50,356 nt of DNA from Ministeria vibrans ATCC 50519 (Eukaryota > Protista > Filasterea), in the NCBI GenBank assembly GCA_943704425.1, contig CALSCP010000985.1, positions 1 through 50,356 of the forward strand, given 5' to 3'. The notes beneath the pieces were generated by a model. The model did not search any database. It was not told the DNA's origin and worked only from the letters and a program-made list of their open reading frames with translations. Every line of letters starts with the position of its first letter. Positions within the stretch are counted from its first letter, which is position 1. Both the position numbers and the translations under genes were made by a program. Of this stretch, positions 2,021 to 6,806 are shown piece after piece.

Positions 2021-2187
2021 GCAAAACACACGACTTGTCGACGGGCAAACAAGTCAAGAAGAGTGCCGAGGGGCAGGAACAAGTGTGATTTGAACTTTGA
2101 AATTTGATCTGCCAGAGTGAAACGTCAATCATAAAAATAATAACACCTAAAAAGACATTTTTTTATTTTTTAACTGCGCTGCTCGCC

Positions 2188-5100
2188 ATGCGTTGGCAAT
2201 CATTGGTAGCGTTCGTGTCCATTGCGGTGGTTGGCGCACTGGCTCTGCCCGTGAGCGATCAACAAAATGCCAATGAAAATAACGACAACACTTCCGCAAG
2301 TGACCCGGCCACGCCCCACTCGCGTGCACGTCGCATCATTCCGGCGCCCCGCTACGAGGGCAACGGAACAGTCATTCGAATTTGGGTATATTTGAAGAAC
2401 CAAAAAAAACAAAAATTATTCTAAAAACGTTTTCAACGATACTGAGAGCTCTCTTGCTCGTGTGCCCGTGACCATGTGTCCCCTCCGTTTGAAGCACGCT
2501 CAATGTGTTACATGCGCGCCGCGTTGGTTGGTTCGCTTTCGCGTTTGTTCTCACGTCAAAAAAAAAAAAAAAAAAAAAAGCCGAAAACGAACTGTACAGT
2601 TTAATCACTTCACATCGCACTCTTTGCCCTTTGCCGTGCCACGTGCGCACCTGTATTGGATTTTCCGGGGCTGTCGCGCAGTCGTGGACGGCTGCAGCTG
2701 CCCCAGACATCCTTTATTGTGTTTGGAGGTACACTCTCACTCAACTCCCATCACTCTCTGTTTTCTCTCGCACATTTTCAGATGGAGGAGCTCCTCTTTG
2801 CCATTCGGCGCGATACTCCCCGCCCCACTGTCCACGCACGCAACCAATACCATGTCACGCTGGTAAGCTCCTTCGAAACGCCGCCAAAGTGCTTGTTTTG
2901 ATCACGATTTTGGTATTTTGCGCTCAGGCTTGTTGGGACGCATTTGCCATTGTCCGTGACGACGTACGACTCGCTGTCATGACCGAACGGGATCGTCAAC
3001 ATGTGCGTGGACACATTGCGAGCATGAGTGCCGACGAGGTGGCCGCCTATGTCAACGAAACAGTGAGTCATGCAGCGTTTACTCTGCTCTCAGCGCGCTT
3101 CGACCAGAGTGCGGGCCGTGCCGAGCAACTGGCATCGTTCCAGCAACGCATGACCGAACTTGGCTACAACTTTGTTAATACGGCGACGACGGGTTACAGC
3201 GCGGCGGCGCTCGGTAACCGCATCGGCACGACTGTCGAGCAACGCTTTCTTCACGACGGTGCCAACGAACACAACGATTACGCTGCCAACAATGGCTACA
3301 CGCCCGTCAACAGTCCGCTCATTGTGGACGGTCTTGGCGTTGGCGACACCGTTGTCGATCCCAACCGTTGGCAGTCGCTGGCGCTCGACTCCTTTGTCAC
3401 GCAAAACGGCATTGTTCTGGGCGACGTGCCTGATTTTGTGGGTCCGCACTGGGGCGGTGTGAAGCCGTTTGGAATGCGCTCGACCGATCGCAGCTCGCGG
3501 GGCGTCTACTTTGATCCCGGTCCGCCACCCTACCTTAACGGCACGGGTCACAACGAGTTTATTCAGGACGTCATCACCGTCCTGCGCTTCTCTGCCTTGC
3601 TTGATCCCACGTTCAACACCACCCTTGACATCAGCCCCGCCTCGATCGGCAACAACACGCTGGGTGTGTCTCCGAGCGACGGTACCGGTTGGTCCGTGAA
3701 CCCCGTCACGGGTGCTCCGTATGCTCATCAGGTGCATAAATTAGGCGACTACGGTCGTATTCTCGCCGAGTACTGGGCCGACGGTCTCGACAGCGAGACA
3801 CCGCCGGGCCACTGGAACACGCTTGTGGGGTTTTTAACAGACCATGAGGATGTGGAATTGCGCTACGAGGGCAAAGGACCCCTGTTGGATCCGCTCGAGT
3901 GGGACGCCAAGCTGTACCTGGCGCTTGCGGGAGCCATGCATGACGCTGCAGTTGCCGCATGGGGCTGCAAGGGGCACTACGACTATGTGCGACCCATCAC
4001 GGCCGTCCGCTACACTACGTCGCCCGCCGTCTTTGGCACGAACATGCAGTTGCCCGAGGTGCCGGGTCTCATTGAGTTTATCACGGCTGAGTCGGCGGCC
4101 TTTGGCGAGCGCCACTACCTCCTGCGCTTCAGCATGGGCCGCATGGCCTGCTTCGCCTACAACGGCCCCCCCAGCCAGGATCACCAACCTCCCGCTGGTG
4201 TCGGCTGGATTCTCTGCGAGCGCTGGACCAGCTACCAGCGTCCCAACTTTGTCACCCCTCCCTTTGCCGGTTACGTCTCAGGTACCTGTTTCCTTCATAT
4301 TTTCTAATTTGACGTTTTTTATTCTTCTTGATCTAAATTCCCATTGTCTTATTTCCATTGTTACTCTCTTATCGTTTGTTTCTGTGTATCTCTCTCTTTT
4401 TTTCTCTCTCTGTTGTGATGGCATTTAGGACACTCGACATTTTCGCGAGCGGGTGCGTATGTGCTCCACCAGTTTACTGGCTCTGCGACGTGGCCCGGCG
4501 GCCTCGGACGACTTTCCGTGCCTAAAGACCACTTTCTTGAGTTTGAGACGGGACCCAGTGAGGATATGGAGCTGCGATGGAGCACGTTTTACGACTCGGC
4601 CGACGAAGCGGGCGTGTCGCGCATTTATGGTGGTATTCATTCAACTGCCGACGACTCCAAAGGGCGCATTATGGGCCAGAGTGTGGGCGAGCGCTCGATG
4701 GAGATGGCTCGCTTCTTTTACACGAAACCCTGCTCGATCTTTTGCACGCCTCTCTTGGCCAACGGTGTTTGCGATGCGCAGTGCAACGTGACCGAGTGCT
4801 CGTGGGATCTCGGTGATTGTGTTGTGGCGCATCAACAGGCGTCGTTCGTCTTTGATGTGTCCAAGTCAACCGAGACAACGCACACCGAAAGTGGACTGGG
4901 TTTCAGTATTGTGGTAGGCAACGCGACGGCCGCGTGTAATGGCGCCGCCTGCCCAACGGTGACCGTGCGGCAATTGGACCCGTCCACTTTGCCGGTGGCA
5001 CTGAATTCGTCTGTGAGCGCTCGCAGTCGTTTCTACGAGGTCACGCCACACGGTGTGACCTTTGCCGAACTGCTCGAGCTGCGTGTTGACGTTGTGGAGT

Positions 5101-6389
5101 TGTCGGGCGAAAATCTGCAGCTGTGGCGTTTGGCGTCACCGTCGGCCAGCCAATGGGAGATTGTCGCGGGGGTAGAGGCCCTGGGTGGCAAGTTGATGGG
5201 GCATGTGAACACTTTTAGTTACTTTGTGGCGGCCACCGACAGTGCTCAGACGCCCGCTGCGCTCTGTGACTCGAATCCGTGTGGCAATGGAGCAACCTGT
5301 GCCGACGATGGTGTCACGTACACGTGTACGTGTCCCGCCGGGATCACAGGCACTCTGTGTGATACAGATATTCTCGAGTGTGTGTCGTCGCCGTGCATGA
5401 ACGGCGCATCCTGTGTGGAAGGCACCAATTCGTTTGTGTGCATGTGTGTGGAGGGTATGACCGGTGATTTGTGTGAGTCGGACACGGACGAGTGTGCCTC
5501 CTCGCCATGTGTAAATGGCGGCACTTGTACTACACCTTCGTTGGGTGTATATGCGTGTCAGTGCATGCCAGGTTTCACCAGTGAGATGTGTCAAGAGAAC
5601 TTCAACGAGTGTGTTTCGTCGCCGTGTGAAAATGGCGCGACGTGTGTCGACGCTGTCAACGGTTACACTTGTACGTGTGTTGCGGGCTTTGCAGGCCCAT
5701 CGTGTGCCACCAACACCAACGAATGTGTGTCGTCACCCTGTCAAAATGGTGCGACGTGCATCGACCAGCTTGGCATGTTTACGTGCACTTGTGTTGCCGG
5801 CTACACGGACGCAGTGTGCTCGAGCGACATTGACGAGTGCGCGTCGAATCCGTGCGGAGCCGGTGGAACGTGCACGACTGCGGGTGGCGTTGGTTCGTTC
5901 GTGTGCACGTGTCCATCGGGCATGACGGGCGTACAATGTCTACAGGCGGTGAACGAGTGTGCGTCTTCACCGTGTCAGAATGGCGCCTCGTGTGTCGACC
6001 AAGCCGACGGCTTTGCATGTACGTGTGCCAGTGGTTTTTCTGGCGTCACCTGTGCTTCGGACATGGACGAGTGCGCGTCGTCGCCGTGCCTCAATGGTGG
6101 CACCTGCACCGACCAAGTGGATGCGTTTGTATGTACATGTACCGCTGGTCTCACCGGTCCCGCGTGCGGTGTGCTAGTGGTAACGAATCATCTGTCGCTG
6201 TCCAAGACCGCTTGGATTGCGCTGTGGGTGTCGCTCATCTGCGGCGGCTCCCTACTTCTGTTTGTTATTGTCTCCTTCCGCTTTGGTGGGGTCGACGGCG
6301 ACGACGAGCGCGATCCCGAAACCAAAGCAGAGAGCCGGTCGACGGTCAACATGATCGACAACGAAGCGGCGGCCACCACCCACGTCTAA
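2188..6389 (+). CDS. Type I membrane protein: signal peptide, vanadium-dependent haloperoxidase (PAP2 superfamily) domain, LNR repeat, ZU5-like domain, 8 EGF repeats, TM helix and short tail
   Basis: Exons 2188-2385, 2782-2862, 2928-4281 and 4429-6389 splice in frame. Motifs: signal MRWQSLVAFVSIAVVGALA; W|MEELLFAIRRDTPRPTVHARN; WGCKGHYDYVRP; PPFAGYVSG|HSTFSRA; SRIYGGIH; LNR CTPLLANGVCDAQCNVTECSWDLGDC; ZU5-like FYEVTPHGVTF...NTFSYFV; 8 EGF repeats; TM AWIALWVSLICGGSLLLFVIVSF; C-terminus ATTHV. Confidence 0.88.
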
Positions 6390-6597
6390 TTCTCATTGTT
6401 ACTTCAAAATTTTAGTACATTTTTTATATTATAGTATGGTTTATACTTCCGTTCGAACGTAAATGAGAGAAAAAAGGAGAAGAAAAAGAGAGAGACTCAG
6501 ATTATGATGGGTTACAAAAACAAGATTTTTATTCAGTTCTAGTGCGCAGCACATAGAATTAATTGATAGAATTGTGTGCTTATTTGGCGTGTGGCAC

Positions 6598-6806
6598 TCT
6601 TCTCTCTATCACTTTCTCTATTTGGTTCTCTCCCTCTTCTCTCTATCACTTTGTTTCTCCCTCCTCTCTCTCGATCACTTTGTTTCTCCCTCCTATCTCT
6701 CTATCACTTTGTTTCTCCCTCCTCTCTCTCTATCACTTTGTTTCTCCCTCCTCTCTCTATCACTTTGTTTCTCCCTCCTCTCTCTCTATCACTTTGTTTC
6801 TTTCTC

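Follow-up and report, generated by a model that had tools for sequence, protein, structure and literature searches.

A spliced gene of the protist Ministeria vibrans joins a bacterial-type haloperoxidase-like domain to an EGF-repeat stalk with a predicted membrane anchor

Vanadium-dependent haloperoxidases (VHPOs) have been described from algae, fungi and bacteria, as enzymes that are either soluble or bound to the wall. Thyroid peroxidase is a type I membrane protein in which an N-terminal halide-oxidising ectodomain is followed by small cysteine-rich modules (EGF among them), a transmembrane (TM) helix and a short tail, and its hydrogen peroxide (H2O2) is delivered at the surface by DUOX. 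We describe here a nuclear gene of the marine filasterean protist Ministeria vibrans ATCC 50519, located at positions 2188-6389 on the + strand of contig CALSCP010000985.1 (the window, meaning the whole stretch of DNA that was analysed, comprises 50,356 nucleotides). From the N-terminus its product carries a predicted signal peptide, an RARR motif, a VHPO-like catalytic domain, one LNR, a ZU5-like module, eight EGF repeats, a predicted TM helix and a 36-residue tail ending in T-H-V.

Several described systems resemble this gene in part. The nearest is a bacterial clade characterised by the domain pair DUF6851 and VCPO_2nd (for example the proteins P0187, P0165 and P0186). Between exon 2 and about residue 97 of exon 4 the whole catalytic block matches this clade collinearly at 42-55% identity; the invariant residues are common to both, as is the long insert that separates the K..RP motif from the SGH motif. 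Those bacterial members in which an export or anchor signal was recognised (a type IX tail, IPTL-CTERM, a signal-peptide-like N-terminus) are likewise secreted or surface-displayed; by contrast, the Ministeria gene is a spliced eukaryotic gene, with LNR, ZU5-like and eight EGF modules and a TM helix instead of bacterial anchors. The characterised bacterial VHPOs (NapH1, NapH3, XhnO11, 9ptr and the Zobellia iodoperoxidase) belong to the same superfamily, have the two-bundle fold and align at the Lys, Arg and His motifs, but they are distant (single-sequence E of 1e-5 at best) and are soluble proteins of about 450-550 residues. The VHPOs of algae and fungi (the bromoperoxidases of Ascophyllum and Corallina and the chloroperoxidase of Curvularia) share with the Ministeria gene a eukaryotic host, the expected vanadate chemistry and, in algae, extracellular action; the Ministeria protein nevertheless does not come from those lineages, whose enzymes are soluble or cell-wall proteins without EGF repeats or a TM helix. 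Thyroid peroxidase appears similar in layout, and the Ministeria genome holds three DUOX-like genes; thyroid peroxidase is however a haem peroxidase of unrelated fold, and the likeness is one of analogy only.

As far as our searches reach, the combination of a VHPO-like enzyme with LNR, ZU5-like, EGF and TM parts in a spliced eukaryotic gene is new, while the family and each of the modules were already known; literature searches for haloperoxidases with EGF, and for haloperoxidases in protists or choanoflagellates, found nothing relevant. If a protist carries a membrane-anchored VHPO on modules of animal type, marine halogenating chemistry would be deployed in a wider range of places and ways than was known. 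The gene would also provide a clean and datable case of the acquisition of introns and of a host surface scaffold by an enzyme from bacteria, and would give access, from the eukaryotic side, to a clade of several thousand bacterial proteins.

Gene structure and active site

The four-exon structure and the splicing of all three introns are confirmed by contigs from public sequencing runs aligned to window positions 2100-6500 (Table 1), as a preliminary description made from the sequence alone had predicted. The most complete of these (record 3 of run X1, 3476 nucleotides) lies on 2781-2861 / 2927-4279 / 4427-6445 and therefore joins exons 2, 3 and 4 in one molecule, so that the enzyme and the EGF and TM parts belong to a single protein, again as predicted. 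It shows one mismatch in exon 3 (G>C at 3545) and zero mismatches in exon 4. Another contig, record 18 of run X6 and from an independent study, covers 3911-4279 / 4427-4830, and the 4281/4429 junction, which the preliminary description had singled out for a check against RNA, is hence present in contigs of two studies. The runs X1, X5 and X6 were only guessed to be RNA; that their contigs come from spliced RNA follows from the absence of precisely the GT..AG intervals. A further run (X7), recorded as a polyA RNA library and labelled marine metagenome, contributes pieces of 179-395 nucleotides with 0-1 mismatches. The transcript contigs extend from 2161 or earlier to near 6440-6445.

Intron 3 cuts the codon of Gly545 in the active-site motif Ser544-Gly545-His546: Ser is encoded at 4278-4280, the G at 4281 is completed by GA at 4429-4430, and His follows at 4431-4433. 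Because this phase 1 intron splits the Gly codon, the active site cannot be divided between two proteins. The length of the joined product, 1197 residues, was obtained by arithmetic from the exon codons, and the homology and structure searches reported below were run on the separate exons, not on the joined four-exon product.

The bacterial-type block starts with the first codon of exon 2 and reaches as far as about residue 97 of exon 4, where it is taken to stop because P0187 itself ends at residue 693; introns 2 and 3 interrupt it, and the boundary between enzyme and LNR falls within exon 4. Exon 3 contains DUF6851 (PF21167; 32.1 bits against a Pfam cut-off of 27, E 1.8e-7). VCPO_2nd (PF22778) is divided by intron 3, with profile positions 2-36 at the end of exon 3 and 115-161 at the start of exon 4, and since the domain is split each piece, scored separately, stays below the cut-off of 27 (18.9 and 14.8 bits); both pieces are collinear with P0187, which itself carries PF22778. 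The pieces of the gene had no match in NCBIfam.

All seven vanadate ligands (K441, R448, S544, G545, H546, R609 and H615) are present, and the motifs K-x6-R-P, S-G-H and S-R-x-x-G-G-x-H can all be read from the sequence, in agreement with the preliminary description, which had reported the vanadate/phosphate ligand set as complete. The ligands occupy invariant or near-invariant columns of the family, each of the three motifs can be aligned to VHPOs of solved structure, and the protein retains the K, R, P, F and S that form invariant columns of the family alignment A1. The acid-base residue His546 is likewise kept; the same position is Phe in NapH3 and Ser in XhnO11. The Lys is preceded by a Trp at a distance of three residues, and the Ser by a Phe at a distance of five, positions which we take, as a lead only, to be those of the halide-pocket residues W350 and F397 of the Curvularia chloroperoxidase.

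Table 1. Coordinates of the gene and of the features of its product (window positions)
Feature	Position	Strand	Basis or content
Exon 1, 66 codons	2188..2385	+	Start codon, signal peptide, low-complexity linker; translation, hydropathy, transcript contig from 2161 joined to 2781
R-A-R-R, residues 46-49, putative cleavage site	2323..2334	+	Minimal furin/kexin consensus match only
Intron 1, 396 nt, GT..AG	2386..2781	+	Joint 2384->2781 in X1 and X5
Exon 2, 27 codons	2782..2862	+	Start of bacterial-type block; 67% identity to P0187 118-144, E 3e-12
Intron 2, 65 nt, GT..AG, within bacterial-type domain	2863..2927	+	Joint in X1 and X6
Exon 3, 451 codons + 1 base	2928..4281	+	DUF6851 bundle, insert region, first half of VCPO_2nd bundle with W-x-x-K-x6-R-P and F-x4-S
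K441-x6-R448-P449, vanadate/phosphate-binding motif 1	3969..3995	+	Invariant columns K348, R355, P356 of alignment A1; aligned to K..RP of NapH3, XhnO11, 9ptr
Intron 3, 147 nt, GT..AG, phase 1	4282..4428	+	4280-4426/4427 skipped exactly by X1 record 3 and X6 record 18
Exon 4, 2 bases + 652 codons + stop	4429..6389	+	Translation, transcript contigs
C-terminal part of VHPO-like domain with His546 and S-R609-x5-H615	4429..4721	+	56% identity to P0187 591-687, E 2e-37
S-R-x-x-G-G-x-H (R609, H615)	4617..4640	+	Sequence; region 56% identical to P0187
Single LNR (PF00066), six Cys spaced x3, x8, x3, x4, x6	4728..4820	+	Pfam 32.6 bits against cut-off 21.2, 1.1e-7
Beta-rich module, ~145 residues, weakly ZU5-like	4821..5263 (aligned core 5016-5168)	+	hhalign, Atlas
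Eight tandem EGF repeats, at least four of calcium-binding type	5264..6170	+	PF00008, 8 stretches, 7.8e-49; PF07645 (EGF_CA), 4 stretches, 9e-17
Predicted TM helix, residues 1139-1161, sole one after signal peptide	6210..6278	+	Kyte-Doolittle windows >=1.6
Acidic tail, predicted cytoplasmic, 36 residues, T-H-V end (6378-6386), then stop	6279..6389	+	Translation

A few minor observations concern the transcripts. At window position 3545 run X1 shows C rather than G over the full depth, which affects the third position of a Thr codon and is a synonymous strain difference. Intron 1, which contains an A22 tract at about 2558-2579, is retained in low-depth contigs (2425-2810 and 2370-2546, at a depth of about 4.6-4.9 versus 91-146 for the spliced form), and these are unspliced pre-mRNA or DNA carry-over. 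Additional apparent joints in the EGF region were rejected as splicing: they mostly lack GT..AG ends and the few exact pieces listed have 2-6 mismatches, and they are probably cross-matches of paralogous EGF transcripts.

Bacterial relatives and origin of the enzyme block

At 42-55% identity, the catalytic block resembles the members of a very large family of bacterial proteins, for which NCBI uses the name "vanadium-dependent haloperoxidase". When exon 3 was searched exhaustively with HMMER, 1847 representatives were returned at E<=1e-3, of which the best 150 are 40-53% identical, and at E<=1e-30 at least 5954 clustered proteins were found; wherever the latter bear a functional name it is 'vanadium-dependent haloperoxidase', from bacteria, and the remainder are called 'hypothetical protein'. 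Relatives at 42-52% identity occur in at least 589 bacterial genomes, which represent many phyla. Of the 17 relatives whose domains were scanned, 11 contain modules by which bacteria secrete proteins or place them on the surface (FG-GAP/ASPIC, type IX secretion tails, IPTL-CTERM, He_PIG, SdrD_B), and the other six show nothing beyond the two VHPO domains, which in one case are present in tandem. Since those close relatives that bear a name or show a recognisable architecture are all bacterial, the assignment of the catalytic domain to a bacterial VHPO-like type, a resemblance that had first been noticed in the style of the sequence, is supported by sequence comparison.

Two of these relatives deserve separate mention. 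P0001, a protein of 1415 residues from a bacterial metagenome contig, contains two tandem DUF6851 + VCPO_2nd units. P0187, the closest relative by identity (55%), is encoded on a metagenome contig (L089:927-4456) 138 bp downstream of a gene for a cysteine-rich protein with EGF_CA and EGF_3 matches. The neighbouring EGF gene made this locus a candidate eukaryotic relative, which we rejected as the contig is GC-rich, intron-less and densely packed, and hence bacterial.

A family profile (built with the window's exon 3 included) was compared with chains of solved structure. It matched 9ptr (E 2.8e-28), NapH3 (8cxl; 1.3e-25), XhnO11 (9l8x; 3.1e-25), NapH1 (3w36; 8.4e-17), the Zobellia iodoperoxidase (4cit; 8.4e-12) and the Curvularia chloroperoxidase (8e-4), and the ten chains at E<=0.01 are all VHPOs or the VHPO homologue NapH3. 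At this threshold no acid phosphatase and no algal bromoperoxidase chain was matched, nor did Pfam report PAP2 (PF01569) on the window's pieces. An AlphaFold model of exon 3 made with 15 sequences has a pLDDT of 57, with only the N-terminal bundle trustworthy; ranks 1-12 of a Foldseek search with this model are all VHPOs, with poor TM-scores, and when the confident N-terminal bundle was compared by VIA-align, NapH3 ranked first (Z 10.7, root-mean-square deviation 2.4 Å over 103 residues).

The enzyme gene is single-copy in the 29.7-Mb genome, in which a search detected no enzyme paralogue, and its base composition (GC 0.58-0.60 and a GC content at third codon positions of 0.64-0.70) resembles that of the rest of the gene, where the latter value is 0.60-0.75. 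Exon 1 gave no match to P0187 and has no bacterial homology. Because two introns lie inside the block, its composition matches the host, it is single-copy and no relative that was found carries the stalk, the simplest and most likely reading would be an old transfer from a bacterium to a eukaryote, after which the enzyme acquired introns and was fused to modules of the host. A transfer of a VHPO into brown algae has also been proposed (PMC11765636). The preliminary description had already suggested a horizontally acquired enzyme grafted onto receptor modules: the bacterial relatives, the introns and the host-like composition speak for this part of it, and the tree discussed below supports neither a placement nor a donor lineage.

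Proposed activity and alternative explanations

With moderate confidence we favour the hypothesis that the gene encodes a bacterial-derived enzyme of the VHPO clade that is held at the cell surface on a host EGF scaffold and oxidises halides with H2O2. An enzyme block from a bacterium would have gained two spliceosomal introns and a host-like composition, and would have been fused to the EGF scaffold that is abundant in the host. Held outside the plasma membrane, and hence also facing the phagosome lumen, the enzyme may bind vanadate from seawater through the seven ligands and, with H2O2 as the oxidant, convert Br-, I- or Cl- into hypohalous acid; prey and the signal molecules of bacteria might be killed or modified by the products, or the reaction might serve to consume H2O2. 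Halide oxidation appears the most likely chemistry because the full ligand set including the catalytic His is present, the layout is that of a two-bundle VHPO, the predicted setting is extracellular and marine, with vanadate and halides at hand, and secreted bacterial precedents exist. Secreted bacterial VHPOs that brominate exogenous quorum signals have been documented (PMC11312541). Were the enzyme active, it would bear on marine bromine and iodine cycling and on the chemistry between predator and prey.

The genome's DUOX-like oxidases could be the source of the H2O2. Three such genes were found (C307:12483-17983, C716:11347-17301 and C945:129972-135938), each with an An_peroxidase (haem-peroxidase) region and the NADPH-oxidase domain NAD_binding_6 on the same strand, and at C307 both lie in one frame of 1302 codons; a role of these genes as a surface source of H2O2 is plausible. 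An extension of the hypothesis, which we put forward tentatively and think rather doubtful, is that Ministeria possesses a vanadium counterpart of the animal pairing of DUOX with a membrane peroxidase, in which a captured bacterial VHPO, tied by an EGF stalk to the membranes of cell and phagosome, would turn H2O2 from DUOX and the bromide or iodide of seawater into hypohalous acid that kills prey or silences the signals of bacteria. If true, it would represent an independent invention of a surface halogenating defence.

A number of points weigh against the favoured hypothesis. In an LG+G4 tree of 134 sequences the branch of the window is long (0.67) and has no supported sister group, and the gene may be spread more widely among eukaryotes, related protists that share it included (the searches covered protein clusters, bacterial genomes, metagenomes and the genome of Ministeria itself). 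The model of exon 3 is poor. Literature searches for DUF6851 found nothing, and hence no member of the clade with measured activity; nor do all VHPO homologues halogenate, NapH3 being an exception. PAP2 acid phosphatases have the same ligand set, and VHPOs in their apo form hydrolyse phosphate esters. Finally, the coupling to DUOX and the action in the phagosome are conjecture.

These points bear above all on the chemistry. Rather than a halogenase, the ectodomain could be a surface phosphatase or phosphoesterase (scavenging phosphate from dissolved organic phosphorus, for instance), or could perform some other chemistry of the VHPO fold, such as a rearrangement of the NapH3 type, an alternative that we judge unlikely but well worth weighing. 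Besides the K..RP, SGH and SR..H motifs common to PAP2 acid phosphatases and the lack of any reported activity for the DUF6851 clade in the literature found, it can draw on NapH3, a non-halogenating isomerase among the best solved relatives, and on a PDB entry (3bb0) whose title describes an apo-chloroperoxidase trapped while catalysing dephosphorylation. The family profile, however, matches no acid phosphatase chain at E<=0.01, the pieces are without a Pfam PAP2 match, and DUF6851 followed by VCPO_2nd is the two-bundle layout of VHPOs; moreover, His546, which NapH3 lacks, is kept. The Trp before the Lys and the Phe before the Ser, at what are presumably the halide-pocket positions W350 and F397 of the Curvularia enzyme, would likewise argue for a haloperoxidase.

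The fold might instead have become a binding module within an adhesion or receptor molecule, with no catalysis. Such a role would suit the remainder of the protein, which consists of adhesion and receptor modules (LNR, eight EGF repeats, TM helix and a PDZ-type tail), and a genome whose giant surface proteins hold thousands of EGF repeats. We nevertheless regard it as improbable: the seven catalytic and ligand residues and every invariant column of A1 have been kept at about 50% overall identity to the bacterial relatives, which argues for continued selection on the active site. As the relatives of the enzyme block are all bacterial, bacterial contamination, a chimeric assembly or the merging of two neighbouring genes might also be suspected, and this suspicion is effectively refuted. 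The two GT..AG introns within the bacterial-type block are removed in transcript contigs, one of which contains exons 2, 3 and 4 with zero mismatches in exon 4; the splice at intron 3 occurs in two studies; that intron divides a Gly codon, and the boundary between enzyme and LNR lies inside exon 4; and the composition of the block matches that of the host.

Stalk, membrane anchor and flanking sequence

The signal peptide, whose hydrophobic core was placed by hydropathy at residues 5-24, and the single TM helix together suggest a type I topology with the enzyme outside, which agrees with the surface display proposed in the preliminary description. Two short motifs noted there are present, and each is a consensus match only: the RARR following the signal peptide fits a furin-like site, and the C-terminal T-H-V, a match over three residues, fits the class I PDZ ligand [S/T]-x-hydrophobic, so that a cleavage site and a PDZ ligand are both putative.

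The LNR of the stalk, which the preliminary description had also identified, exceeds the Pfam cut-off, scores 38.5 bits in a scan of the genome, and matches Notch1 NRR chains, with all three of their LNRs aligned and with the W-D-x-x-D-C end. The eight EGF repeats and the TM helix likewise stand as described. A ZU5 identity for the module between LNR and EGF repeats fared less well. Pfam reports no ZU5 (PF00791) there even at E<=10, and the same model detects six ZU5 domains elsewhere in the genome; in support of a relationship, an hhalign comparison of the module with a profile of those six gave a probability of 70.7 and a score of 34.0 (against a maximum of 20.0 among 200 shuffles and 22.4 for the reversed sequence), and the nearest named cluster in Atlas is ZU5 (0.87). 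A single-sequence AlphaFold model of the LNR and ZU5-like part was unusable (pLDDT 42). We provisionally call the module ZU5-like.

The six ZU5 domains recognised by Pfam (C1214:78639-78854, C124:27734-27994, C1507:14694-14945, C1157:16343-16519, C2584:17092-17316 and C1072:8003-8215) are located within open frames of 479-3401 codons, several of them directly after EGF-type cysteine motifs, which suggests that ZU5 is used as an extracellular module in the Ministeria genome, unlike the cytoplasmic ZU5 of animals. EGF repeats are hugely expanded in the same genome: a query with window positions 6051-6386 yielded 5929 candidates at a first look, and at least 323 matches were scored, many of them in open frames of 1000-6000 codons and in tandem arrays (for example at C916:15993-22791).

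Relatives of the stalk as a whole were not found. A word-based search of protein clusters with residues 95-280 of exon 4 returned no relatives at E<=1e-3, phmmer matched the stalk to none of the best 150 enzyme relatives, and a metagenome scan with residues 1-280 of exon 4 found only bacterial C-terminal VHPO pieces. Within the genome itself no paralogue of the LNR and ZU5-like part, nor of the TM helix with the tail, was detected, the query 6051-6386 being matched by its EGF part only.

The preliminary description had called the stalk Notch-like and had taken LNR and ZU5 as hints of regulated shedding, and neither view is upheld. An LNR and calcium-binding EGF repeats on a type I membrane protein are indeed shared with Notch, but here there is a single LNR where Notch has three, and it lies N-terminal to the EGF repeats, about 460 residues from the membrane, so that the order enzyme, LNR, ZU5-like module, EGF repeats and TM helix reverses that of Notch. 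The window's pieces had no matches to NOD/NODP or ANK, no RAM region is present either, and the tail has only 36 residues. Domain order, the single LNR and the lack of NOD/NODP thus rule out a Notch receptor, and because the LNR lies beside the enzyme and far from the membrane, a juxtamembrane shedding switch of the Notch type is unsupported.

Downstream of the gene, about 200 nucleotides past the stop codon, window positions 6598-6800 and beyond are occupied by a CT-rich minisatellite, whose repeat unit measures about 27 nucleotides, together with (TC)n tracts.

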